Of a DNA stretch of 64,000 bases, positions 10,814-56,546 are shown piece by piece (position 1 is the stretch's first letter; each line of letters opens with the position of its first letter). The DNA lies in sequence record MK250017.1; one strand, given 5' to 3'. Both the position numbers and the translations under genes were made by a program. Below the pieces are notes generated by a model. That model saw only the letters and a list, made by a program, of their open reading frames with translations. It made no database searches and was not told the DNA's origin.

Positions 10814-12079
10814 ATGCCTATTATTTAGAAAACAAAGTATTCATATAATGATTTGACTATTGAGCCTGCAGTAATTAGTTCAATTAAGAGTAGGAAGGAA
10901 TGTGATCCATATGAGCGTATGGATGTAAATATGAGAGATTATCTTCCGTTGTTTACTGCACCAATGTCTACTATTGCAAATGAACATAATTTTAATATAT
11001 GGAAGAAGAATAAAATTATGCCTATGTTGCCACGAAATATTGGTGCTGATCCAAATGGAAGTATTGATAAACGAATTAGTTATATCAAAGATTTTCTTGA
11101 TAATGGTGATTGGGTTGCGTTGTCACTTAAGGAATTTGAATATGTTTTTGTAGAACATAAGATGATGAGTCCTGGACAAATCTTTCCTGGTTATAATCGA
11201 ACATATAGAGTATGTGTAGATTTGGCTAATGGTCATATGGAATGTCTATATGATACAATTAATAAAGCGAAGGAAATTGCAAGAAATGACAATTATAAAC
11301 TTATTGTAATGACAGGAAATATTGCAAATTCTGAAACATATAGATGGATTTGCAAACATGCTGAAGTTGATTATATTAGATTGTCTGTGGGAAGTGGATC
11401 AAATTGTATTACGGCTACGCAGACCTCTGTTCATTATCCTATTGCATCATTAATTGATGAATGTAAGTATATAAAGAATGTATACGAAGGTAAATCTTAT
11501 GCTAAATCAACACCTTATATTATTGCTGATGGTGGTGTTAGAGGATATGCAGATGTTATTAAGGCTATTGCTCTTGGTGCAGATTATGTAATGATTGGTA
11601 GTTTGTTTACAGGATTACTTGAATCTGCTGCACCTCTTGATATTGAGTGTTATAATTCACATTATAAGTATGGATATGCAGCAGGTATTATTAATGATGG
11701 TATTAATAATATTCTTAATCTTTGGGATAGTCTTGAAGATGAAGATGATAATGATACATTAGTACCAATTGATAATAAAGAATTGGAGCAGAAGAAGAAA
11801 GATTTCATTAAGGATATGAAAGATATTGTAAAGGAATCTTATGGTATGTCTACAAAGAAGGCTCAGAAGTTGATTAATCCAAATGCAAAGTCAAAGACTT
11901 CTGAAGGATGTACGAAGTATATTCATGTAAAGGAAACTGTTAAGCAGTGGTCAGATAATATGATAGATTATTTCAGGTCAGCAATGAGTTATACAAATAA
12001 GAAATATATTAATGATTTCAGAGGAAAAGTAGATCTGATTATTAATAGTTCATCTGCAATTCTTGCAGTAAATAAGTAA
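10814..12079 (+). CDS. IMP dehydrogenase / GMP reductase family enzyme (421 aa, TAG at codon 5)
   Basis: MPII-TAG-KTKYSYNDLTIEP restores the N-terminal YxDxxIxP motif; catalytic loop GSGSNCIT; IIADGG; ALGADYVMIGS; YGMST; SEG. Confidence 0.85.
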
Positions 12080-19637: not shown

Positions 19638-19676
19638 AAAAGAGAGATTAAATTGTTGATATTTAATCTCTCTTTT
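19638..19676. terminator. bidirectional terminator between convergent genes
   Basis: Perfect 16-bp inverted repeat AAAAGAGAGATTAAAT. Confidence 0.8.
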
Positions 19677-21318
19677 TATATATTAAATATGGTGAATAAC
19701 ATTTTAAATAATCTTCCCTAATATCATCTTTATTACAATTTAGAAATTCTTTTAACATACTTTTATTAAATCTAAATTCACTACGTTTATAATTATAATA
19801 ATTTAATGTAAATTTAATTTTATCTGATTCTAATTTAAAATTTAATGTTTCATATAATTTTATATTATCAGTTTCTAAATTACAATTAACAATAATAGAA
19901 TTATAAGTATAATTACATTTAAAATAATTTAATAATAGTTTTTCACAACCTATCACATATAAATTATTTTTATAACAAATTCTATTTAATATATAATTAT
20001 TATCTGATATATTACTAAATGTCATACAACATAATAATTCATTATTCTTAAATAATCCTAATTTTATATCAGACTCAATATAATTATCAATATGATAAGT
20101 ATTTATAAAATCTTTACATATATTTTCATCTAATTCTTTAATGATACAATTATCTGAAAATACTTTCTGCTCAAGATGACAACTTCTTAATATAATATTT
20201 TCTATTTTATCTATATTATAATGAATATCATCTTCCCTAAATGTCAACATCTATATATCAGTTTTAGATACTAAATCATATTTTACTTTAAATCTATTCT
20301 TACCATTAATTCCACAATGCCAATAAATTCCATTACATTCTATTGCAACTTTATAATCAGGTAAATAAAAATCAAATTCACGCGGTGATATTATATATCT
20401 AACATGTTGTTCAAACTTTATATTATGTTTCTCCAATAATAATCTTATTTTATATTCTATAGACGTCTCTAAATTTTTTTCTGGATTACATATAGGACAC
20501 ATAACAATATCTTTCTACTATCTATTAAAAAATGTATAATTCTTTATTGAAAATGGATTATGTATTTTACATTGATTATAAACTATAAATTCATTTTTAT
20601 TATCTGAATATTTAATTTCATAACCACGTTTTAACCATTTATTTTCTATTGTTTTATGTTTATTAACTAATTTCTATTTAACATTATTTTCATTCTTATT
20701 CGCACATTCATTAGAACAATAATGTCTAAACCCTTCACTGAATCTATAAAACTTAACATATTTTCCACATGTAGGACATACAGGACTTTTATTAATATGA
20801 TTCTTCATTCGATATAAAATCTCCTGTATAACTGATTTATTCCTCTATAAATCATCATACCTATTCATCATGTAATCATATATACCAAATTGCTTTAACT
20901 TTTTATTTTTACAATATTCAGATATTAATCTGTCATCTTTAATCATTAAATTCAATACATATTCATCATCAATATTTTCTTTCTACTTTACATCAGTTAA
21001 TTTATGTATTTTATTCGGATCATTTAATGAACATTTATATGAACAATATTGATTATAACCATATAAAAATCCTCTGAATAATAAAGGAATCTCTTTACCA
21101 CATGTTTTACAATATAAATGTAAATCATCTGGTAATTTATAATATATCCTATATATGATTTCCTGTATATTTTTTACAGATTTAAATCTATTCATTAAAT
21201 AATCATATAAACCATGATCTTTTAACCATGATTCTTTTATTCTACATGTATTTAATTGAATTTTATTGTTTCTAAATACTGTTAATTTATCTATTATAAT
21301 CTGATCTGCCACTTCCAT
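19663..21318 (-). CDS. free-standing Hef/Vsr-like homing endonuclease (about 551 aa, TAG-rich)
   Basis: Track ORFs 20983, 20251, 19663 share one frame via 6 TAGs (including TAG-TAG); two CxxCG...YCSxxC repeats, CPICN, catalytic EFDFYLPDYKVAIECNGIYWH; start 21318 or 21360. Confidence 0.72.
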
Positions 21319-21354
21319 ATTTTTTATATTAATAAATGTTAAAAATGTTTTAAT

Positions 21355-21382
21355 AAACAAATAACATATTTTACTATATAAT
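21355..21382 (+). promoter_or_regulatory. putative middle-class promoter for the polB-IntN gene
   Basis: AAACAAA 21355 and TATAAT 21377. Confidence 0.6.
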
Positions 21383-21414
21383 TTAAAATTTGAATTAGAA
21401 TTTAATTGAAAAAC

Positions 21415-22221
21415 ATGGAAGAAAAGAAATATAAATTTTGTCAGATAGATCCAAATAATTGTACTGTTGAAGAACTTGAAGAAGAAGTAGAAAGACTTAA
21501 AAACTTAGGTGATTTTTACGAGACTAAACAGTTGGCACTTAAGAAATTTATTAATAGTGTTTACGGAGCAACCGCGAGCAAGTATTTCATTGCACATAAC
21601 ACAGCTGTTGCGGAATCTATTACACTTCAGGGACAGGATTTGAATCATTATTCAGAGAATTCTGTTAATGCATATTTTAGTGGTATATTTCAGAATGATA
21701 CTGAATTGCATAAGAAATTGGGTATTGATTCGGAAAAAGCAAAAAAAGTAAGTATTGCCAAGGGTAAAACAACAGAAACAGGTACGTTAGATGGACCCGA
21801 GTTTTCATATCTTAATGGAAATCAGAGTCTTACTGTTGCTGGAGATACTGATAGCCAAATTGGCTCGACGCAATTCTATGTTGATAATAACATAACTACA
21901 ATGGAAGATTTCTTTACAAAAGCTAAATATGAAAATAATGATGTGGTTATAAAGTTACAAAATGGTTCTGAAGTTGTTCCTGTACATAATCACAATACAT
22001 TAACATATATAGATCATGATTTTAAAACGTCAGAACGCCCTATTAATTATATAATGAGACACAAAGTAACAAAGGATAAGTTCAGATTGAAGACTAAATC
22101 AGGTAAAGAACTTATAGTAACTGGAGATCATAGTATTATGGTTATAAGAAATAATGAATTGATTTCATTACCAGCAAGAGAAATAAAGAACACAGATAAA
22201 ATTATAACATTGGATAAGTAA
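21415..22221 (+). CDS. polB: family-B (T4 gp43-like) DNA polymerase fingers/palm fragment fused to split intein N-half (268 aa)
   Basis: Motif B KKFINSVYG; AESITLQGQ; first half of motif C AGDTD followed directly by the intein; ends at a true TAA 22219-22221; no exonuclease domain or motif A. Confidence 0.9.
   Translation: MEEKKYKFCQIDPNNCTVEELEEEVERLKNLGDFYETKQLALKKFINSVYGATASKYFIAHNTAVAESITLQGQDLNHYSENSVNAYFSGIFQNDTELHKKLGIDSEKAKKVSIAKGKTTETGTLDGPEFSYLNGNQSLTVAGDTDSQIGSTQFYVDNNITTMEDFFTKAKYENNDVVIKLQNGSEVVPVHNHNTLTYIDHDFKTSERPINYIMRHKVTKDKFRLKTKSGKELIVTGDHSIMVIRNNELISLPAREIKNTDKIITLDK
21853..22218 (+). mobile_element. split intein N-fragment (IntN, 122 aa, Ser1, no Cys)
   Basis: Block A SQIGSTQFYV; block B KELIVTGDHSIMV (TxxH); stop after EIKNTDKIITLDK. 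Confidence 0.9.
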
Positions 22222-23339
22222 TGAAATATTTAACAGAGGATGAGATAATTTAGTATTGTAAGAATCATAATATAGATTCGTCAATATGTTACTGTAAAGA
22301 ATGTGGTAAATTTCTTGCATATGATAATGCTGTATTTCATATAAATTCAGTTACGAAGAAATTAGTATGTGATGATAATAAGTTATCATTTTTAAGTACG
22401 AGAAATTATAATGGTAATGAATATCATTTATGTAGGTGTTATGATTGCGTATGTGAGAAATTTCCAAATTTTAAATATGTAAGATTTAAGTTTGCACATA
22501 AAGCTGCAAAATATACATAGTATGGATTTGGTGTTCCTGATGAAGATTTTAAACCTGTATCAAAAGCAAGACAATGTGTTACTAAAGAAAAAATGATTAA
22601 GAAATATGGTATTTCTGAAGGTACAGAAAGATGGAATTCATATTGTGAGAAACAATCTGTTACAAATACATATAAGTATAAGCATGAAAAATATGGGATG
22701 TCTTCAGATGAGTTTGATGAATATAATAAATCGCGAGCAGTAACAAAAGAAAATCTTATAAAAAGACATGGAAAAAAAGAAGGATTAAAAATCTGGAATG
22801 ACTATATTGAACGTCAGCGATATACATGTACATTAGATTATTTTATTGAAGAATATGGTAAAGAAGATGGAACACAAAAATATAATGAATTTGCAGAAAA
22901 ACGCTCAGATCAATATTATTTAATAGGTAATAAATCAAATATATCATTAGATTTATTTTCTAATTTAAAAGAATATTATAAAGATAATGATACTTATATA
23001 GAATATACAGTTAAATCATTAAATAATAATTTTTATCATGTAGATTATTATGATAAATCATTAAATATTGTTATCGAATTTTATGGAGATTTTTATCATT
23101 TTAATCCAAAGAAATATAATGGTAATGAAACAGATTATTTCATATTAGGGAAAGAACGAACGGTTAAAGATAAGTGGTAGCATGATAAAGAACGTATAGA
23201 TGATATTCAACAAACATTAAATTGTAAGGTAATAATTGTTTGGGAATCTACATATAAAAATGATAAAAAAGGAACTATTAATTCATTAATATAGATGATT
23301 AATAATAAAGAACAATTAAATGACATAACAGAAATATGA
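22221..23339 (+). CDS. free-standing Vsr/DUF559-like homing endonuclease (372 aa, 4 TAGs)
   Basis: ATG overlaps upstream TAA (TAATG); Cys-rich N-terminus; three KYG/RHG/EYG..EG...W/Y repeats; VDYYDKSLNIVIEFYGDFYH...W-TAG-HD..R...VIIVWE; TGA 23337. Confidence 0.8.
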
Positions 23340-23578
23340 TACCATATCAATCTAAAATAACTATTATAAGAAACAGTAATTTTAAAAAGCATAATACATT
23401 ATTAAATACTTTTTTGAAATTGATAGGAAGTAATTATCGTGATTTATATTATGCATTAAATCATGATTTGAATTGTATTACGATAAATGACAGATCAGAG
23501 ATAAATGATAATCAAATTATATATGCGAAATATTTAGGTATTGACATTATTGATGAATCACTTAAGAGAATTAGTTAA
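23336..23578 (+). CDS. small protein with BRCT-like C-terminus (80 aa)
   Basis: ATGA overlap with the upstream gene; YAKYLGIDIIDES resembles the BRCT KAxxLGIxIIxE helix. Confidence 0.45.
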   Translation: MIPYQSKITIIRNSNFKKHNTLLNTFLKLIGSNYRDLYYALNHDLNCITINDRSEINDNQIIYAKYLGIDIIDESLKRIS

Positions 23579-23618
23579 ATAGTATTATCGTGAAAAGTAT
23601 TTCAATGAAGAAAATAAT

Positions 23619-23646
23619 AAACTAATATTACAATATATTATATAAA
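23619..23646 (+). promoter_or_regulatory. putative middle-class promoter for the IntC-polB gene
   Basis: AAACTAA 23619 and TATAAA 23641, same 22-nt offset. Confidence 0.55.
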
Positions 23647-23669
23647 ATATATAATTAACAAAAGAAAAG

Positions 23670-23801
23670 ATGAATTACGATATACAAATAGAAGATATTG
23701 ATGTAATAGAGCAATTAGAAGATTTCAATGATGAGTATGTATATGATATTGAAGTAGATGATACTCATACATTCTTTGCAAATGATATTCTTGCTCACAA
23801 T
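23670..23801 (+). mobile_element. split intein C-fragment (IntC, 44 aa, no Cys)
   Basis: Block F EYVYDIEVDDTHTFFAN; block G DILAHN then Ser+1 (TCA 23802). Confidence 0.92.
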
Positions 23802-24644
23802 TCAATATACGTAGAGTTTGGAAGAATTTGCCAACAATTAGATATTCCGGAGTCTGAATGTGCACAGTTTGTTGTTGATCTTTGGAATTATGGTTGCGGA
23901 CCATATATGCAGCAGAAATATGAAGAGTATGCGAAGAAATATAATTGTGATGTAAATATTCAGAATTTGGAGTTAGAGAAAATTGCGGATACAACAATTT
24001 TAACATCAAAGAAGCATTATGCAATGGCAGAATGTTTTAAGGAACCTAATATTTTCTTGGAACCAATGGAGGAAGTAGTTTATAAGGGTTTGGAAATTGT
24101 TCAAGGATCTACACCACCATTTGCACGTGAATGTCAGAAAGATTTTACACGTTATATGTTGCAGTGGTATCAGACACATAAAGAACGTCCACCTTATGAA
24201 GAAATTATATCTCGTATTAAGGGTTATAAACAGCAATTTTTATTTAAAGATCCTGCCGATATTTCAAAGGGAAGCTCGATAGGAAATTATCAGAAATTTG
24301 TATTGGATGATAAGAATAAGTTAGTGTTTGGTGAACATTGTCCTATTCAGGTTAAAGCTTCAGGAATTGCTAATTTTATTTTAAATCAGCCAAAGAATAA
24401 GAAATATAAGGTTAAATATAATCCAATTAAAACAGCAGATAAAGTAAAGTGGTATTATGCAAAAGATAGAACATATGATTGTTTTGCATTTTTGCCAGGT
24501 GCTTATCCGATTGAGTATGCGCCGGAGATTGATTATGATAAGCAGTTTGAGAAAATGATTCTTGAACCTTGTAATCGTATTATTAAAATTATCGGTTATA
24601 CAACATTAACATCTAATTTATGTTATACTGCTGCACTTTGGTAA
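23670..24644 (+). CDS. polB: split intein C-half fused to DNA polymerase C-terminal palm/thumb (324 aa)
   Basis: After HN comes SIYVEFG, completing AGDTD|SIYV; LELEKI, KKHYA, YKGLEIVQGSTPPFAR, IDYDKQFEK match gp43-type C-terminal motifs. Confidence 0.9.
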   Translation: MNYDIQIEDIDVIEQLEDFNDEYVYDIEVDDTHTFFANDILAHNSIYVEFGRICQQLDIPESECAQFVVDLWNYGCGPYMQQKYEEYAKKYNCDVNIQNLELEKIADTTILTSKKHYAMAECFKEPNIFLEPMEEVVYKGLEIVQGSTPPFARECQKDFTRYMLQWYQTHKERPPYEEIISRIKGYKQQFLFKDPADISKGSSIGNYQKFVLDDKNKLVFGEHCPIQVKASGIANFILNQPKNKKYKVKYNPIKTADKVKWYYAKDRTYDCFAFLPGAYPIEYAPEIDYDKQFEKMILEPCNRIIKIIGYTTLTSNLCYTAALW

Positions 24645-24671
24645 TTTTTATAATTAAAATATTTTAATAAA

Positions 24672-25097
24672 ATGACGGAAAACGAAATAATAGATGCTAT
24701 ATCATTTATTAATGCACATAAAGATATAGTTGGATATAATATAGCAAGAAAAGCAACTGAGTTGATTTATAAATATGATGGTTATCCAGATTTGGATGAT
24801 ATTGAACATAAGAGATTATATGATTTTTATGAAAAACATAAAGAAGTATGTAAAGGTGGAGATTCATATAGATTAATTGAATTATATACATGTGGATTTA
24901 CTAATACTTATGTATGTAATGTATGTAATGAATCATATGATTATACTAATTATGATAAAGAATGTTGGTCAGATGGAAAGGGAGAGAAATTACCATTTTC
25001 GTTTATTGAAGTTGGTACAGGTATCGGACCATGTATAACTATAGTATGTACAGAAAATAATGATTCTAAAGATATTACAGATATTGATTCATGGTAA
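24672..25097 (+). CDS. hypothetical protein (141 aa)
   Basis: ATG-TAA ORF. Confidence 0.7.
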   Translation: MTENEIIDAISFINAHKDIVGYNIARKATELIYKYDGYPDLDDIEHKRLYDFYEKHKEVCKGGDSYRLIELYTCGFTNTYVCNVCNESYDYTNYDKECWSDGKGEKLPFSFIEVGTGIGPCITIVCTENNDSKDITDIDSW

Positions 25098-25641: not shown

Positions 25642-27564
25642 ATGAATATCTTAGACAATATTAATGAGAAAATAAATCCATGTGATGACTTTTATAATTA
25701 TGCTACAGGAAATTGGATAAAGAATAATCCACAGCCTGATGAATATCCAACATGGAATGTATTTACAAAGATAGAAGAAGATAATATCGATAGGATTAGA
25801 GATATTATTACATCATCAAAAACTGATTCATCTGTAATTAATCATAAGATTAATGATTGTTATAATATTATTATGAATTATGATAAGAGAAATAAAGATG
25901 GGAAGAAACCATTGATTTCTTATATCAATGAACATGTAAATAATCTTAAAACAAATATGGATGTAATTCTTGAATCTGCACGAAATAATATTGAAATGTT
26001 TTTTGATACAGGGTTACAACCAGATAGTAAAGGATCAGGTAAATATGAAGTTACTATATATCAGGATGGATTAGGTTTAGGAAATAAAGATTACTATTTG
26101 AAAGATACTGAAGAAAATCGAAAATATATGAATGCATATTCTCAATATATTATTGATTTATATGAATATCTGTATAATGATAATAATATTGCGTTAATGG
26201 AAAATAATAAGATATTATCAATAGAAAATTTATTGGCACCTGATTCATATTCAGTAGAAGAACTTCAAGATCCTATACTTAATTATAATAGAATATCTGT
26301 TAATGAATTATCAGAAAAAACATGTTTTGATTGGCGATTATATTTAGATACATTAGGTTATACAGAAACAAATGAAGTTATTGTAAGTAATATTGAATTT
26401 TTAAAGTGTGCATGTAAACTTCTCTTAACATTAGATACTTCTTATTTAAAGACTTTTTATGAATGGCAGGTAATTAATATTGCTGCAACAAAACTTGATG
26501 ATAAAATATATGACTTAGTGTTTAAGTATAGTCAGGTATTTACAGGTGCAAAAGTACAGTATCCGAAAGAAAAAAGAGCAATTAATAAGATTAATAGTGT
26601 TTTTTCCGAAGTCATCGGACAAATTTATGTTAAAAAGTATTTTAATAAAGATTCAAAGAATGATGTTATTAATATTATTGAAAATTTAAAGTCATCATTT
26701 GAAACTATTATAAATAGTCAAACATGGATGAGTAATGAAACAAAAGAAAAAGCATTAGATAAATTACATGCAATGAAACTTAAAATAGGGTATCCAGATA
26801 AATTTGAAGATTTTTCTGATATTCCTATTGATATTAATTTAACATATTTTGAAAATTCATTAAATATTCAGGAATATTTTAGAAAGAAAAATATGGAAAA
26901 ACATTATAATAAGGAAATTGATTATAATGAATGGTATATGGATCCTCAGACTATTAATGCTTATTATGATTGTATTCAAAATGAGATTTGTTTTCCTGCT
27001 GGTATTCTTCAATATCCATTTTATGATCCTAATAGAGATCCTGAATATAATTATGGAGCAATAGGTACAATTATAGCCCATGAAATGACACACGCTTTTG
27101 ATAATCATGGACGACATTATGATAAACATGGTATACTGAATGACTGGTGGACTGAAAGTGATTCTAATAAATTCAATGAATTAACAGATATAACAAAAGA
27201 ACGATTTAATAATCTTGAAGCTTTACCAGGATTAAAATGTGATGGTTCTTTAACTTTGGGTGAAAATATAGCAGATTATGGTGGATTGAAGATTGCATAT
27301 TATGCATGTAAAAATATTATGAAACATGGAATATGTACAACAAAAATTTGGGAACATAAATTCTTTTTAGCATATGCAAATAATTGGTCTGAAATTACAA
27401 CTGATGAAGCTATTAAGAATCTGGTCGCAAATAATGAACATACTATTAATCGATTACGTGTAAATGGAACACTACCTATGTTTACACCTTGGATAGATTA
27501 TTATAATGTAAAAAAGACAAATAAATTGTATTTGGATATAGACAAACGTGCAAAAATCTGGTAA
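25642..27564 (+). CDS. pepO: M13 family zinc metallopeptidase, PepO/neprilysin-like (640 aa)
   Basis: PCDDFYNYATGNW; INAYY; HEMTH zinc motif; GENIAD; no signal peptide. Confidence 0.93.
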   Translation: MNILDNINEKINPCDDFYNYATGNWIKNNPQPDEYPTWNVFTKIEEDNIDRIRDIITSSKTDSSVINHKINDCYNIIMNYDKRNKDGKKPLISYINEHVNNLKTNMDVILESARNNIEMFFDTGLQPDSKGSGKYEVTIYQDGLGLGNKDYYLKDTEENRKYMNAYSQYIIDLYEYLYNDNNIALMENNKILSIENLLAPDSYSVEELQDPILNYNRISVNELSEKTCFDWRLYLDTLGYTETNEVIVSNIEFLKCACKLLLTLDTSYLKTFYEWQVINIAATKLDDKIYDLVFKYSQVFTGAKVQYPKEKRAINKINSVFSEVIGQIYVKKYFNKDSKNDVINIIENLKSSFETIINSQTWMSNETKEKALDKLHAMKLKIGYPDKFEDFSDIPIDINLTYFENSLNIQEYFRKKNMEKHYNKEIDYNEWYMDPQTINAYYDCIQNEICFPAGILQYPFYDPNRDPEYNYGAIGTIIAHEMTHAFDNHGRHYDKHGILNDWWTESDSNKFNELTDITKERFNNLEALPGLKCDGSLTLGENIADYGGLKIAYYACKNIMKHGICTTKIWEHKFFLAYANNWSEITTDEAIKNLVANNEHTINRLRVNGTLPMFTPWIDYYNVKKTNKLYLDIDKRAKIW

Positions 27565-52361: not shown

Positions 52362-55300
52362 ATGAAGGTAACAAAACGTGATGGTAGTTTTGAGAATTAT
52401 AGTGTTTAGACAGTTAAACGTGCAGTTAGAGAAGCGTTTAAGTCAACAAAGACTAAATACTCAAAAGACACAATTTCGAATATTGTAAGTTCTATTACGC
52501 CATATGATGGCATTCCTGTAGAAGAAATACAGGATCAGATAGAAACAAGTTTGTATTCTCATGATCAGCCTAAAGTTGCAAAAGAATTTATTCTTTATCG
52601 CAATAAGAAGAAGGAAATCAGAGAATGGGTTGCTAATAAAGAAGCATTTATTGAAAGATATAAAAATGCATCAAATACTGCAAATAGTACAATTGATGAT
52701 AATTCTAACGTATCATCTAAGAACATCGGTGTATTAAATGCAGAAATTCATAAAGGTGATAATATTCTTGTAAGTAGAGGAATGATTACAAGAAAGTTAA
52801 AAGATTTATTCCCTGATTTTAAAGCAAAACAATATCAAAAAGATTTAAAAAATCATATTATCTATAAGAATGATGAATCAAGTTTTGCTGGTGCTATAAG
52901 TCCTTATTGTGTTAGTGTATCTATGTATCCATTTCTTAATCATGGATTGGAAAAGATTGGAGGTTTATCATGCCATCCACAAAATCTTGATTCCTATTGT
53001 GGTATGTATGTAAATCTTGTATTTGCAGTTGCAGCACAATTTGCAGGAGCAGTAGCAACATCAGAATTCTTGGTATATTTTGATTATTTTGCACGAAAGG
53101 AATTTGGAGATGATTACTATTTGCATAGTAAAGAATTCTATAAGATTGGTCCAAAATATCGTAAGTTACTTAATGAATCTAATTACTGGTGTAAAGATGT
53201 AGATACACTTAGAAAACATGATTTTGGTACAGATGAATTAAATAAATTGAGAGATGAACTTGTTTATAATTCAGAACGACCATTATCTGATGAAGAACTT
53301 AAAGAATATGAAACAGAACTTTCTAAATATGATGTAGAAGGTTCAATAAAAGATTTTACAAATCCTATTAAGATTGGTGATGGTACAAGAACTATTGGTT
53401 CATGTATACAACAATTCTTCCAACAAGTAGTGTATTCAATTAACCAACCCGCGGCAAGTCGTGGTCTGCAATCTGCATTTGTAAATTTCTCTTATTTTGA
53501 TAAGCCTTTCTTTGAAGGTATGTTTGGGGAATTTGTATTTCCAGATGAAGAAGGTACAAGACCTTGTTGGGAAAGTGTTTCATGGTTGCAGAAAGATTTT
53601 ATGATTTGGTTTAATAAAGAGCGCCTTCGTACTATAATCACTTTCCCTGTTGAAAGTTTTGCATTGGTATATAAGGATGGAAAGTTTGTAGATGAAGATT
53701 CTGCAGATTTTGTTGCAGAAGAATATTCTCGTGGTCATTCATTCTTTACTTATATGTCAGATACTGTTGATTCATTATCAAGCTGCTGTTTCGATGGTGA
53801 TACACCATTTATGTTTGTAGAACCTCTTAATATGGAAGAGCATGGTGGTAATAATGCATATATGGTTTCAACTATTAAAGATGCATATGAAAAATATAAA
53901 GATGATATAATTAATGTATATCATATGAATTTTAATGGTACTACAGGTAAATGTACAGGTGAATGGGTAAATGCAAAATTTGTAAAAGCACAAGCTATTC
54001 AGGAAGTACGAATTTATTTTAAACCAGATGATTTCAATCCAGATGAGTCAAGGAATGTAATGAGAGTTACGCCGGATCATATATTCCCTGTTATTGATGA
54101 TAATGGATTTATTACAGATAAAAATGCATATTTGTTACAGACTGGAGATCAACTTATTTTTGAATATGCACAATATATGGGATTATTTAGAGATGAATTC
54201 CCTGATAGAGATCAAGATTTAGTAAAACGTGCTATTTCAAAAGTTGAAATTGTAAATCTTGATGAACCAAAGGATTATTATTGTGTAGAGTTATGTGATA
54301 AAAATATTGAACCATACTTTTTGTTACCTAATGGAAATATTACACATAACTGTCGCCTTAAGAATAAGATTCAAACAAAGGAATTTAATTTTACAAATGG
54401 TAACTTAGGGATCAACTTGGGTCCTTTATGTGCTTAATTGCTAATCAAGCAATGTATTAATATAGCGATATTAATGCATCGGTGAAGCCTAAACATAAGT
54501 TGTGAAACTATATGCATGGTAATACCGAACCAAGTTAATAAATATGTTATAATTTTACATTTATAATATATGAATAATAAAATATTTACAATTTACAAAA
54601 TATCATTTCCAAATGGAAAAGTATATATTGGTTAGACATATCATTATCATTAGAGAATTAAAGAACATTTAAATGAAATGAAACATAGTGATTATAAATT
54701 ATATAGAGCTATGAGGAAATATAATATAAATGAAAATAATTTTTCTATAGTAGAAGAAAATATTTTAACATAGAACGATGCAGATAATAAAGAAATATAT
54801 TATATCAATTTATATGATAGTTATAATAATGGATATAATTCTACATTAGGTGGACATGCTGCAACAATAACAAAAATAGGAGAAGAACATCCTAAAGCTA
54901 TATTAAATGATAATGAATTATTAGAATTAAGAAAAATTAGATATTCTATGAAATATACATTTGGAGAAGTATATGATATGTATAAAAATAAAATGTCAAA
55001 AAGTGGTTTTTCAAAATATTGGCATTATTATACAAGACCTGAAATCGGAGAAGAATATAATACTGATGAAGTAAATAAATTTTATAAATCTGATAGGAGA
55101 ACAAGAAGAGGTATATTACATGCAAATTCAAGAAATTTATCAGATGAAGAAGTTTTAAATATAAGAATACGATATTTTGTAAATGGTGAAAAAGAAGATG
55201 ATATTTTTAAAAAATATAAACACTTATATTCAAAGAGTGGTTTTAATAAAATATTATTTGGATAGTCATATATGCATGTAAAAATGCCTATTAAAACAGA

Positions 55301-56546
55301 TAAGTGTAAATAGAAATTACCATAGTTATCAAAAGAAGAAGTAATTTCATTAAGAGAACAATATAATAATGGTAAGTCTATTAATGAATTAAAAGTTGGA
55401 AAATATGAAAAATATTCAATGAATAATTTTAGAAATATGTTAATAGGTAGAACATATAAAAATTATTAATGTGTGTGGAGGTCATCCCCTAAGTGATGAG
55501 CAGGAGGAGTAGGGCTACTATTGATACGTAGCAGTATTTTAGGAAACGAAGTACTTTAAATGCCGAAATAGTGCAATGTTTATTAACATAATAAACATAA
55601 GATATGACCCGGACCATATAGAAATATATGGAGAAAACGTCAAACAGGTTCAAAATCTGTAATAACATTAAATCTTAGTCGTATAACACAAGATTGGTTT
55701 AATAGTGTTAAGAAAACAGGTGTAACAAAAGAAAATGTAGAAGAACATTATGATGAATTGTGTCATTATTTTGGTGACATTCTTGATAGAGTATACAAAT
55801 ATCATACTGCATATAATGAACTTCTATGGGATATGTATGATGCTGGTTTGCTTCCGGTATATAAAGCTGGATTTATTAGTTTGAATAAGCAATATTTAAC
55901 AATTGGATTAAATGGTCTTAATCAAATGGCAGAATTTTTAGGAATTACATGCAATATAAATCCTCATTATGAAAAATTATGTCAAACAATATTTGGATAT
56001 ATTAAGCAGAAGAATCAAGAAGCTGCAGGTATGTTTAACGGACACAAGCTCACGTTTAATACCGAGTGCGTACCAGCGGAAAGTCTTGCAATAAAAAATT
56101 ATAATTGGGATAAAGAAGATGGATATTGGGTAAGTGATGATACAAATCTTTATGCATCTTATATTTTTAAACCAAATGACAAGAGCTTATCAATTTTCGA
56201 TAAAATTACATTACATGGTCGTGATTATATCGGAGATTTCTTAGATGGTGGTTCTGCGGCTCATCTTAATTTATCAGAGCATTTATCTAAGAAACAAATA
56301 AAACATATCATGCAATTTGCAGCACAGGTAGGATGTCAGTATTGGACATTTAATGTACCTAATTGTAAGTGTGAAGATTGCGGATATATATCAAAAACTC
56401 CATTTGATAAGTGTCCAAAATGTGGATCAGTTCATATAAGTTTATATGACCGTATCATTGGATATTTAACTAAAATTTCGAACTGGTCAGATGGACGTCA
56501 ACAAGAACAAAAGACACGTGTTTATCTACATAGTGAAAATATTTAA
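52362..56546 (+). CDS. nrdD: class III anaerobic ribonucleotide reductase, join(52362..54412,55640..56546); 985-aa precursor, 797 aa after intein removal
   Basis: ATP cone MKVTKRDG (TAG at codon 16); SLSSC|intein|CRL; spliced NGNLGIQTGSKSVITLNLSR; VPAESL; CxxC..CPKC; glycyl-radical RIIGY. Confidence 0.93.
53787..54350 (+). mobile_element. cis mini-intein in NrdD (188 aa, no endonuclease)
   Basis: Block A CFDGDT; block B VTPDHIF; block F YYCVEL...YFLLPNG; terminal THN then Cys+1. Confidence 0.92.
54413..55639 (+). mobile_element. group I intron (1227 nt) with GIY-YIG ORF in nrdD
   Basis: GGGAT|...AAAACG|TCAAAC; P1 guide GGGTCCTT; P4 TCGGT 54479 / ACCGA; P7 GAGGTCAT 55478 / ATGACCC 55604; S-like AAGATATGACC; P9 CCATATA-GAAA-TATATGG. 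Confidence 0.92.
54570..55469 (+). CDS. intron-encoded GIY-YIG endonuclease (299 aa, 6 TAGs)
   Basis: TIYKISFPNGKVYIG-TAG-T, RIKEH, LYRAMRKY, EIYYI, NGYNSTLGG; HTH-like C-terminal repeats. Confidence 0.9.

Follow-up and report, generated by a model that had tools for sequence, protein, structure and literature searches.

The 64,000-nt stretch of sequence record MK250017.1 analyzed here (the window) is part of the genome of Prevotella phage Lak-A1, and positions are those of the window unless another record is named, window position 21415 corresponding to position 426072 of MK250016. In this window, a family-B DNA polymerase is very probably interrupted by a class 1 split intein of the Ser1/Ser+1 type, whose halves would be joined by trans-splicing, with a Vsr-like endonuclease as the driver of what is termed a 'fractured gene'. 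The polymerase parts (exteins, lengths in amino acids, aa) and the intein halves are encoded by two genes as follows, the evidence being given in brackets, where dN/dS is the ratio of nonsynonymous to synonymous divergence:

21415..21852, plus strand: N-extein in the gp43B1-like gene, 146 aa (Pfam DNA_pol_B, alignment, dN/dS)
21853..22221, plus strand: N-intein (IntN), 122 aa, with the TAA stop at 22219-22221 (Pfam Intein_splicing, best PDB match 9hth)
23670..23801, plus strand: C-intein (IntC), 44 aa (Pfam Intein_splicing, best PDB match 9hth)
23802..24644, plus strand: C-extein in the gp43B2-like gene, 280 aa, stop TAA (Pfam DNA_pol_B, PHROG matches, alignment)

The two intein halves and their polymerase flanks

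The first gene is an open reading frame (ORF) at 21406/21415-22221 (+) in frame 1, whose start at the ATG of 21415 is kept in Lak-B, and the second is an ORF at 23670-24644 (+) in frame 3. An earlier reading of the letters alone, the original prediction, had proposed that the first gene reaches AGDTD of polymerase motif C, continues with 122 aa of an intein carrying Ser1 and TGDH and stops at a TAA, and that the second, in another frame, starts with 44 aa of IntC ending in HN and continues as SIYVEFG. Sequence and Pfam comparisons matched this description residue for residue. The first gene ends LTVAGDTD/SQIGST...LIVTGDHSIMV...IITLDK, the slash marking the splice junction, and is closed by the TAA, while the second begins MNYDIQ...YVYDIEVDDTHTFFANDILAHN/SIYVEFGR, and the two exteins would give the spliced product of 426 aa (146 + 280) that had been calculated. 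The N-extein comprises the second helix of the fingers, which bears motif B (KKFINSVYG), and the part of the palm that reaches to AGDTD of motif C; the C-extein opens with the Ser+1 nucleophile and spans the remaining palm and the thumb. The Pfam DNA_pol_B profile is matched over 148-235 by the first gene and over 261-350 by the second, and the C-extein also matches the DNA polymerase families phrog_1918 and phrog_262 (E 9e-37 and 8e-31).

The features of a class 1 intein were found in both halves: Ser1 directly follows the N-extein, block B (LIVTGDHSIMV) contains T-x-x-H, block F (YVYDIEVDDTHTFFAN; YVYDIEVDDTH in the alignment) contains the Asp, and block G (DILAHN; DILAHN/S in the alignment) provides the His-Asn pair, which is followed by Ser+1. 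IntN matched Pfam Intein_splicing above the cut-off (profile 8-94, E 3.7e-10). It further carries YIMRHKV, which aligns with YIMKHTV of the phage Aes123 intein and contains the (R/K)-His 'NX' motif, a mark of Ser1 inteins (PMC10189870). In the alignment, Ser1 is kept in Lak-A1, Lak-A2, Lak-C1 and Lak-B1, and also in Aes123, PTm1, F379 and PA5oct. All catalytic positions (Ser1, T-x-x-H of TGDH, R-H of the NX motif, the block F Asp and HN/S) are retained in the four Lak alleles, although their IntNs have diverged to as little as 61% identity. The first intein-bearing protein is 100% identical in the four Lak-A1 GenBank records, MK250015-18 (about 541.6 kb), and 82-94% identical in Lak-A2, Lak-B and Lak-C, while IntC is identical in Lak-A1, Lak-A2 and Lak-C1 and 93% identical to that of Lak-B. 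In comparison with Lak-B, the dN/dS values of IntN, IntC, the N-extein and the C-extein were 0.12, 0.08, 0.04-0.05 and 0.04, respectively, at synonymous divergences (dS) of about 0.5-1.0; the Lak-C1 IntN was left out, because its in-frame TAG shifts the protein-guided codon alignment. These values indicated strong purifying selection on all pieces.

Neither half contains a Cys. IntC has 14 D/E and no K/R (net -14), and the second half of IntN has 14 K/R vs. 7 D/E (net +7), so the counts of the original prediction were confirmed. The polarity is indeed the reverse of that of the DnaE split inteins, as it had stated, but is not unusual, being found in Aes123, PTm1, F379, gp41-1 and gp41-8. In a structure prediction of the IntN-IntC complex, the ipSAE was 0.86 vs. 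0.00 for the best of three controls, three runs agreed in at least 95% of the contacts, and the partner pLDDT was at least 76; in the calibration, the mark used was reached by 51 of 78 solved complexes and by 2 of 108 mismatched pairs. The charges and the predicted complex fit an association of the halves through complementary charge into one domain, as a matter of prediction only.

Lak megaphages read TAG as glutamine (code 15), with a CTA-anticodon suppressor tRNA and release factor 2 (PMC6784885). The window supports this reassignment: an ORF between the two intein-bearing genes that is broken under table 11 extends to 372 aa, its similarity to the VSR endonuclease of Aes123 crosses a TAG, one TAG of Lak-C1 stands in the alignment where Lak-A1 has a Gln codon, and full-length relatives of 370-380 aa are common. 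Therefore, the locus was read under both genetic codes. Neither intein-bearing gene contains a TAG, and both terminate with TAA.

The recoding raises the alternative that the split is only apparent, a cis-intein being restored by intron splicing, read-through or frameshifting, or the stop being an assembly error, since a stop codon is read as sense in these phages (PMC6784885) and phage endonuclease genes often lie inside group I introns (PMC2677866, PMC2988022). However, the codon that closes the IntN gene is TAA and not TAG, and it is kept in four diverged lineages (Lak-A1, Lak-A2, Lak-C1 and Lak-B1). The stop at 22219, on which the prediction had been made to depend, is also present in independent metagenome contigs: a 28.6-kb wastewater contig spans 21300-24750 with 34 substitutions, none of them at 22219-22221, and a 1688-nt contig from a second run bridges the stop. 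Further, IntN and IntC lie in different frames with several TAA/TGA stops between them, and no group I intron or other Rfam family was found in 21300-24800 even at E <= 1, and an intron or other structured RNA in the gap was rejected. Lak-A2, in which the endonuclease gene is absent, still has two separate ORFs. Moreover, the split point occupies the same alignment column as in Aes123, PTm1 and F379, and the separately made Aes123 halves splice (PMC11923092). The stop is genuine and no assembly slip, and a merely apparent split is accordingly considered very unlikely.

Relatives of the intein and the third polymerase gene

Aes123 (JN377899) is annotated in the order gp43A, gp43B1 ('includes putative N-intein'), putative VSR endonuclease and gp43B2 ('includes putative C-intein'). 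It shares with Lak the T4-type family-B polymerase (PolB), the DTD/S insertion site, Ser1 and Ser+1, the lack of Cys, the NX histidine, the split point (120 + 39 vs. 122 + 44 aa), the charge pattern (basic in the second lobe of IntN, acidic in IntC), a Vsr-like endonuclease homologue between the halves, and the gp43A/gp43B1 break at the fingers tip. The Aes123 intein (PDB 9hth) was the top solved match of both halves (IntN, E 4e-12; IntC, E 5e-6), followed for IntC by the PolB16 and gp41-1 inteins. The identities of the Lak IntN and IntC were 33% and 54% with Aes123, 38% and 52% with PTm1, and 39% and 54% with Campylobacter phage F379, respectively, while the flanking exteins were only 23-27% identical; the inteins are more alike than their host polymerases, as expected for a horizontally moving element. 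On this alignment, the identities and the 9hth matches, the Lak intein is a diverged allele of the Aes123 PolB1 type and no new insertion site, in agreement with the original prediction. Unlike in Aes123, where gp43A is directly upstream, the Lak-A1 gp43A lies about 222 kb away and that of Lak-B about 6 kb downstream of B2; the Lak endonuclease carries recoded TAG codons, an extra 80-aa ORF is present, and the genome is that of a 541-kb gut megaphage.

The naturally split Aes123 intein trans-splices in vitro and has been engineered into the variants CL and CLm (PMC11923092). For Lak, it might be argued that the halves no longer splice and act as a high-affinity, non-covalent clamp that holds the polymerase fragments together. 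Split phage enzymes can work non-covalently, examples being the Aeh1 NrdA (PMC3045599) and the gp43A/gp43B break, and block A is poorly kept between Lak alleles (SQIGST in Lak-A1, STSWKS in Lak-A2). Nevertheless, such a clamp is unlikely, given that every residue of the splicing chemistry (Ser1, TxxH, the NX His, the block F Asp, HN and Ser+1) is present in four of four alleles despite the IntN divergence, that a HINT domain of roughly 166 aa left between DTD and S would occupy the metal-binding hairpin of motif C, and that the homologous Aes123 halves splice.

Among the cultured phages of the collection, the Tenacibaculum phage PTm1 (AP019524, ORF-236 to ORF-241) has the polymerase pieces closest to those of Lak. 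It is annotated as having an 'intein-containing split DNA polymerase precursor'; no characterization of it was found in the literature searched. Its layout (A / B1-IntN / VSR endonuclease / IntC-B2) and charge polarity are those of Lak, but in PTm1 all pieces follow one another colinearly in a stretch of 8 kb, IntC has a single Cys and the genetic code is standard. A 462-kb uncultured phage (LR756500) shows the gp43A/B1/endonuclease/B2 order of Aes123. The F379 intein (Eucampyvirinae) aligns with the Lak intein at the identical insertion site, and is presumed here to resemble the CP21 intein.

'Fractured genes' were described as split intein halves parted by a free-standing GIY-YIG or Vsr-like endonuclease gene, with gp41-1, gp41-8, NrdJ-1 and IMPDH-1 as examples (Dassa et al. 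2009, PMC2677866). The Lak arrangement is identical, with the break at the canonical endonuclease-insertion point; a Vsr-like gene stands between the halves, and therefore the locus is a textbook fractured gene. The stage of the published model in which the endonuclease is lost and the split retained, represented by locus gp41-7 (PMC2677866), is mirrored by Lak-A2. In contrast to Lak, the eight host proteins of that set do not include PolB, and the inteins use Cys (PMC2677866). The basic-IntN/acidic-IntC polarity, unlike that of DnaE, was already described for gp41-1 and gp41-8 (PMC2677866), and in Lak it is held in common with Aes123, PTm1 and F379. The PolB split intein of PA5oct/MIJ3 (MK797984) also lies at the DTD/S site, but is DnaE-like with the opposite polarity: its IntN has a net charge of -14, its 85-aa IntC one of +4, and a 'Hef-like' rather than a Vsr-like endonuclease gene is located between the halves. 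Therefore, the polarity has been reversed among inteins that share one insertion site.

Further Cys-less split PolB inteins, namely CP21 PolB1, LCGC14 PolB2 and GOM-OPS-1 PolB2, have been screened as tools (PMC12707363). Together with PolB16 OarG and the Neq Pol intein, they are Ser-dependent, Cys-independent split inteins of family-B polymerases as is that of Lak, the likeness of LCGC14 PolB2 and GOM-OPS-1 PolB2 being one of description only. PolB16 OarG differs from Lak in its atypical split near the N-terminus (PMC10189870), and the thermophilic Neq Pol intein requires 50-70 °C. The suggestion that the Lak pair is a candidate Cys-free ligation tool thus stands as far as candidacy goes, but the family has already been mined (Aes123/CL/CLm, CP21, LCGC14 and GOM-OPS-1; PMC12707363, PMC11923092).

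The original prediction had assembled the polymerase active site from two genes. This part did not hold: the active site is built from three genes, the third being a gp43A-like gene of 515 aa at 202070-203611 (-) of MK250016, which encodes the exonuclease domain together with motif A (GGLDFASLYPS). Pfam DNA_pol_B was matched at only three places of the complete Lak-A1 record, with profile 28-155 at 202073-202462 (-), 148-234 at 426168 and 261-350 at 428615. The exonuclease domain and motif A are separated from motifs B and C and the thumb, as in the gp43A/gp43B split polymerases (Petrov & Karam), and the gp43A/B1 break falls at the identical fingers-tip position in the alignment of Lak-A1, Aes123, PTm1 and LR756500. 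In Lak-A and Lak-C, the gp43A-like gene lies about 222 kb from the B1/B2 locus on the opposite strand, while in Lak-B1 (MK250020) it shares the strand of B2 and lies about 6 kb downstream of it; the differing placement implies that a large rearrangement took place, one end of it close to this locus, which is rich in endonuclease genes. The gp43A-like gene is followed by an endonuclease gene of its own, of the DUF7487/Vsr type. A hidden intein at the gp43A/B1 break, where B1 begins MEEKKYKFCQIDPNN/C, was considered and rejected, as the helical tail of gp43A has no HINT blocks and no Pfam intein match.

In Lak-A1, Lak-B1 and the relative G001, the lineages read, codon 7 of the gp43A-like gene is TAG, and the second IntN codon of Lak-C1 (MK250029) is TAG where Lak-A1 has a Gln codon; if read as a stop, it would end the gene at ...AGDTDS. 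The replicative polymerase is therefore not free of recoded codons.

Neither PolA nor the PolIII alpha subunit was found in the complete Lak-A1 record, which holds only the three PolB pieces, in line with the expectation that replication should depend on the split gene. The pieces might instead be decaying remnants, with replication by a host polymerase or an unrecognized phage polymerase: three dispersed gene pieces do lie amid selfish endonuclease genes, and Lak phages are uncultured. But the purifying selection on every piece (dN/dS 0.04-0.12, with dS near 0.9), the intact motifs A, B and C, the retention of the three pieces in all 15 of 15 GenBank Lak genomes, more than 400 metagenomic clusters and the lack of another polymerase family in the Lak-A1 genome make this scarcely credible.

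The endonuclease genes and the exchanged cassette

The 1.45-kb gap between the two intein-bearing genes had been reported with the frame difference, which was borne out, but without the 372-aa endonuclease gene and the 80-aa ORF that it holds. The features other than the intein and its exteins are:

22221..23339, plus strand: free-standing Vsr-like homing endonuclease gene, 372 aa under code 15 (homology, fold match)
23336..23578, plus strand: conserved 80-aa ORF between the endonuclease and IntC genes (kept across Lak lineages)
21814..21852, plus strand: patch of clustered synonymous differences directly 5' of the intein insertion site (lineage comparison)
19663..21360, minus strand: second homing-endonuclease-like gene, 565 aa under code 15 (ORF under TAG = Q, PHROG matches)

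The endonuclease ORF, which has in-frame TAG at codons 11, 100, 320 and 358, starts with an ATG that shares bases with the IntN stop (TAATG). Its product aligns with the 'putative VSR endonuclease' of Aes123 at 33% identity (E 6e-32), across the codon-320 TAG, and with the VSR endonuclease of PTm1 at 29% identity (E 1e-23), and matches phrog_22677 (E 4e-48); full-length relatives of 370-380 aa form 337 clusters. The core motifs of Vsr-type nucleases (Asp ... E-F/Y-x-G-x-x-x-H ... W-E) are present, and D275, E286, F287, G289, H293, W341 and E342 are invariant in an alignment of 24 relatives. The Pfam Vsr profile gave no match on ORF 22221-23339, nor did a sequence search against PDB give a meaningful one; Vsr was pointed to by the fold search only, in which an AlphaFold model (pLDDT 86) matched E. 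coli Vsr (1vsr/1cw0) first, with a probability of 1.00 and a TM of 0.57 by target. A regulatory hairpin at the endonuclease start, as in the fractured genes of Dassa et al., was not seen; the candidate was rejected, its fold being no better than that of shuffles (z -0.82), and the start overlaps the upstream stop instead.

The second endonuclease-like gene, with 6 in-frame TAG, abuts the start of the gp43B1-like gene and so lies at the gp43A/B1 fracture. It matches phrog_559 and phrog_3339 (HNH / homing endonuclease; E 1e-41 and 6e-41) and, weakly, Pfam Vsr (E 0.003), and is akin to the endonuclease located between B1 and B2 in LR756500. The number of TAG codons varies across the window: they are absent from most ORFs for metabolism and replication, amount to 4-6 in each homing-endonuclease-like gene and reach up to 18 in some structural or glycosyltransferase-like genes. 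The TAG-rich endonucleases may be translated only when TAG is decoded, or may derive from TAG-rich regions or donors. More speculatively, the recoded TAG would tie expression of the endonuclease, and in some strains maturation of the polymerase, to the code-15 switch.

The ATG of the 80-aa ORF overlaps the endonuclease stop (ATGA). Its product is 97.5% identical in Lak-A2 and Lak-C1, even in the endonuclease-free Lak-A2, and 64% identical in Lak-B1, where it has 101 aa; no Pfam, PHROG or Atlas match and no homologue or domain outside Lak was found, and Aes123 and PTm1 lack any counterpart at the corresponding place. A promoter and terminator scan of 21200-24800 gave 33 promoter-like sites vs. 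31.4 expected and no terminators. Contigs from a metatranscriptomic run cover B1, the endonuclease gene and B2, but contigs cannot show transcription and DNA carry-over is possible, and therefore no claim on expression is made.

Comparison of the lineages revealed an exchanged cassette. Among Lak-A1, Lak-A2 and Lak-C1, the flanks are about 98-100% identical, while identity drops to 48-90% over about 21814-23317, the profile falling at 21791-21850 and recovering at 23318. Lak-A2 lacks the endonuclease gene through a clean 1104-bp difference (22210-23313) and retains the TAA-ended IntN gene, the 80-aa ORF and the IntC gene. Synonymous divergence between Lak-A1 and Lak-A2 was 1.3 for IntN vs. about 0.1 for both exteins and 0 for IntC; therefore, IntN was replaced by recombination and had not simply been relaxed. 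The left edge is sharp: between Lak-A1 and Lak-A2/Lak-C1, the last 13 N-extein codons show 8-9 differences, only one of which is not synonymous, vs. 1-2 differences in the preceding 133 codons. The 28.6-kb wastewater contig joins an A1-like IntN and endonuclease gene to the other version of the 21814-21852 patch.

The patch is the left edge of the exchangeable cassette and the putative target region of the endonuclease. Free-standing phage endonucleases are known to cleave at a distance of hundreds of bp from the gene that encodes them, with co-conversion of the interval (PMC2988022), and, taken with the sharp left edge, this points to a probable target near the DTD-coding sequence. Homing and site-specific cleavage by the endonuclease are suggested, indirectly, by the presence/absence polymorphism and by the sharply bounded cassette. 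It is possible, though a tentative idea, that the mobile unit is a half-intein cassette, consisting of the last ~40 nt of the N-extein, IntN and the endonuclease gene, with a single IntC left unchanged. One IntC would therefore have to splice with IntN partners that are only ~60% identical to each other. If true, the half-intein cassette would exemplify promiscuous pairing in nature and offer a ready panel for the study of split-intein specificity.

The pool of alleles is large. B1-type proteins form 407 clusters at 90% identity, nearly all of 262-285 aa with both Pfam domains, and some are from contigs of 390-530 kb. A cluster of 147 aa is a Lak-C1-type gene truncated at the IntN codon-2 TAG by code-11 gene calling. 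Some alleles have an insertion of roughly 75 aa in the N-extein, and many Lak-like alleles carry a non-catalytic Cys in the intein (e.g., GDHSCMV).

Other genes of the phage resemble parts of this system. A second fractured gene in the window, at 52362-56546 (+), is the anaerobic ribonucleotide reductase nrdD. Its first ORF (52362-54437, 691 aa; ATP-cone, NRDD profile 31-240) carries a contiguous Cys1/Cys+1 mini-intein (...SLSSC/CFDGDT...GNITHN/CRLKN) and stops about 28 aa after it; a free-standing GIY-YIG endonuclease gene with six TAG follows at 54570-55469, and the ORF at 55758-56546 covers NRDD profile 305-560, so the gene has one cis-intein and one intein-less endonuclease split. Outside the window, at about 396131-396604 of MK250016, a stand-alone ORF of 157 aa is nearly all mini-intein (MKTNLNGG/CLLPNE...GIVNHN/SGTNF), with 8 and 5 flanking residues and a Pfam Intein_splicing match over 37-155 (E 1.8e-9), and looks like an orphan HINT-domain gene. 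An IMPDH/GMP-reductase-like protein (10814-12079, +) is apparently unbroken, IMPDH being a fractured-gene host in Dassa et al. 2009 (PMC2677866). The ORF at 25642-27564 (+) encodes a metallopeptidase of the M13 family (640 aa; Peptidase_M13_N, E 5e-92).

Proposed mechanism and its significance

In the proposed mechanism, two polypeptides would be made, a gp43B1-like-IntN of 268 aa and an IntC-gp43B2-like of 324 aa, and the basic second lobe of IntN and the acidic IntC would capture each other to form one HINT domain. Splicing would start with an N-O acyl shift at Ser1, aided by the block B His and the NX His, and would proceed through transesterification by Ser+1, cyclization of the terminal Asn and an O-N shift. 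The product would be a 426-aa chain in which motif C is restored as AGDTDSIYV, and which would associate non-covalently with the 515-aa gp43A-like subunit, the junction of the subunits lying at the fingers tip. The endonuclease would be the selfish driver, most likely cutting endonuclease-free alleles near the DTD-coding region, and repair would copy the sequence that begins at the cut, runs through IntN and reaches the endonuclease gene.

Several points weigh against this mechanism. Splicing of the Lak halves is argued for by the conserved residues, the class 1 pathway and the trans-splicing of Aes123, with which the identity is modest, and many natural split inteins splice poorly in vitro (PMC11923092). 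The Pfam Intein_splicing match of the second gene (profile 117-155, E 9.3e-5) is under the gathering score, because the piece is short. The IntN-IntC prediction may pass merely from likeness to, or memory of, solved inteins. Association of the gp43A-like subunit with the spliced chain is a proposal. The E-value of the E. coli Vsr fold match is weak (7e-3) despite its first rank and its probability, the activity of the endonuclease is suggested by comparison, and its target site is proposed from the substitution pattern.

The main text of the Lak genome paper (PMC6784885) contains neither 'intein' nor 'DNA polymerase', and no description of the locus was found in the literature searched for Lak, megaphage or Prevotella together with intein, although one may exist elsewhere, e.g., in intein databases. 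Cys-less split inteins of the Aes123 PolB1 type and the fractured-gene arrangement are already known, and Lak is another member. Modestly new are the remote position of the third polymerase gene, the swapping of half-intein cassettes while IntC stays constant, the allele that lacks the endonuclease and the size of the allele pool. For protein engineering, Cys-less split inteins that work at ambient temperature are few (the Aes123-derived CL and CLm, PolB16 and LCGC14), and Lak-type phages supply more than 400 natural clusters of N-halves at 90% identity as well as IntN variants that share one IntC.

The understanding of split inteins and fractured genes is unchanged by this locus, which adds a new and highly diverse clade of phages to the range of a known family. 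For phage biology, it suggests that the only DNA polymerase of the largest known gut phages would be produced from three scattered genes by trans-splicing and non-covalent assembly, and the scattering of these genes explains why standard annotation shows fragments only.

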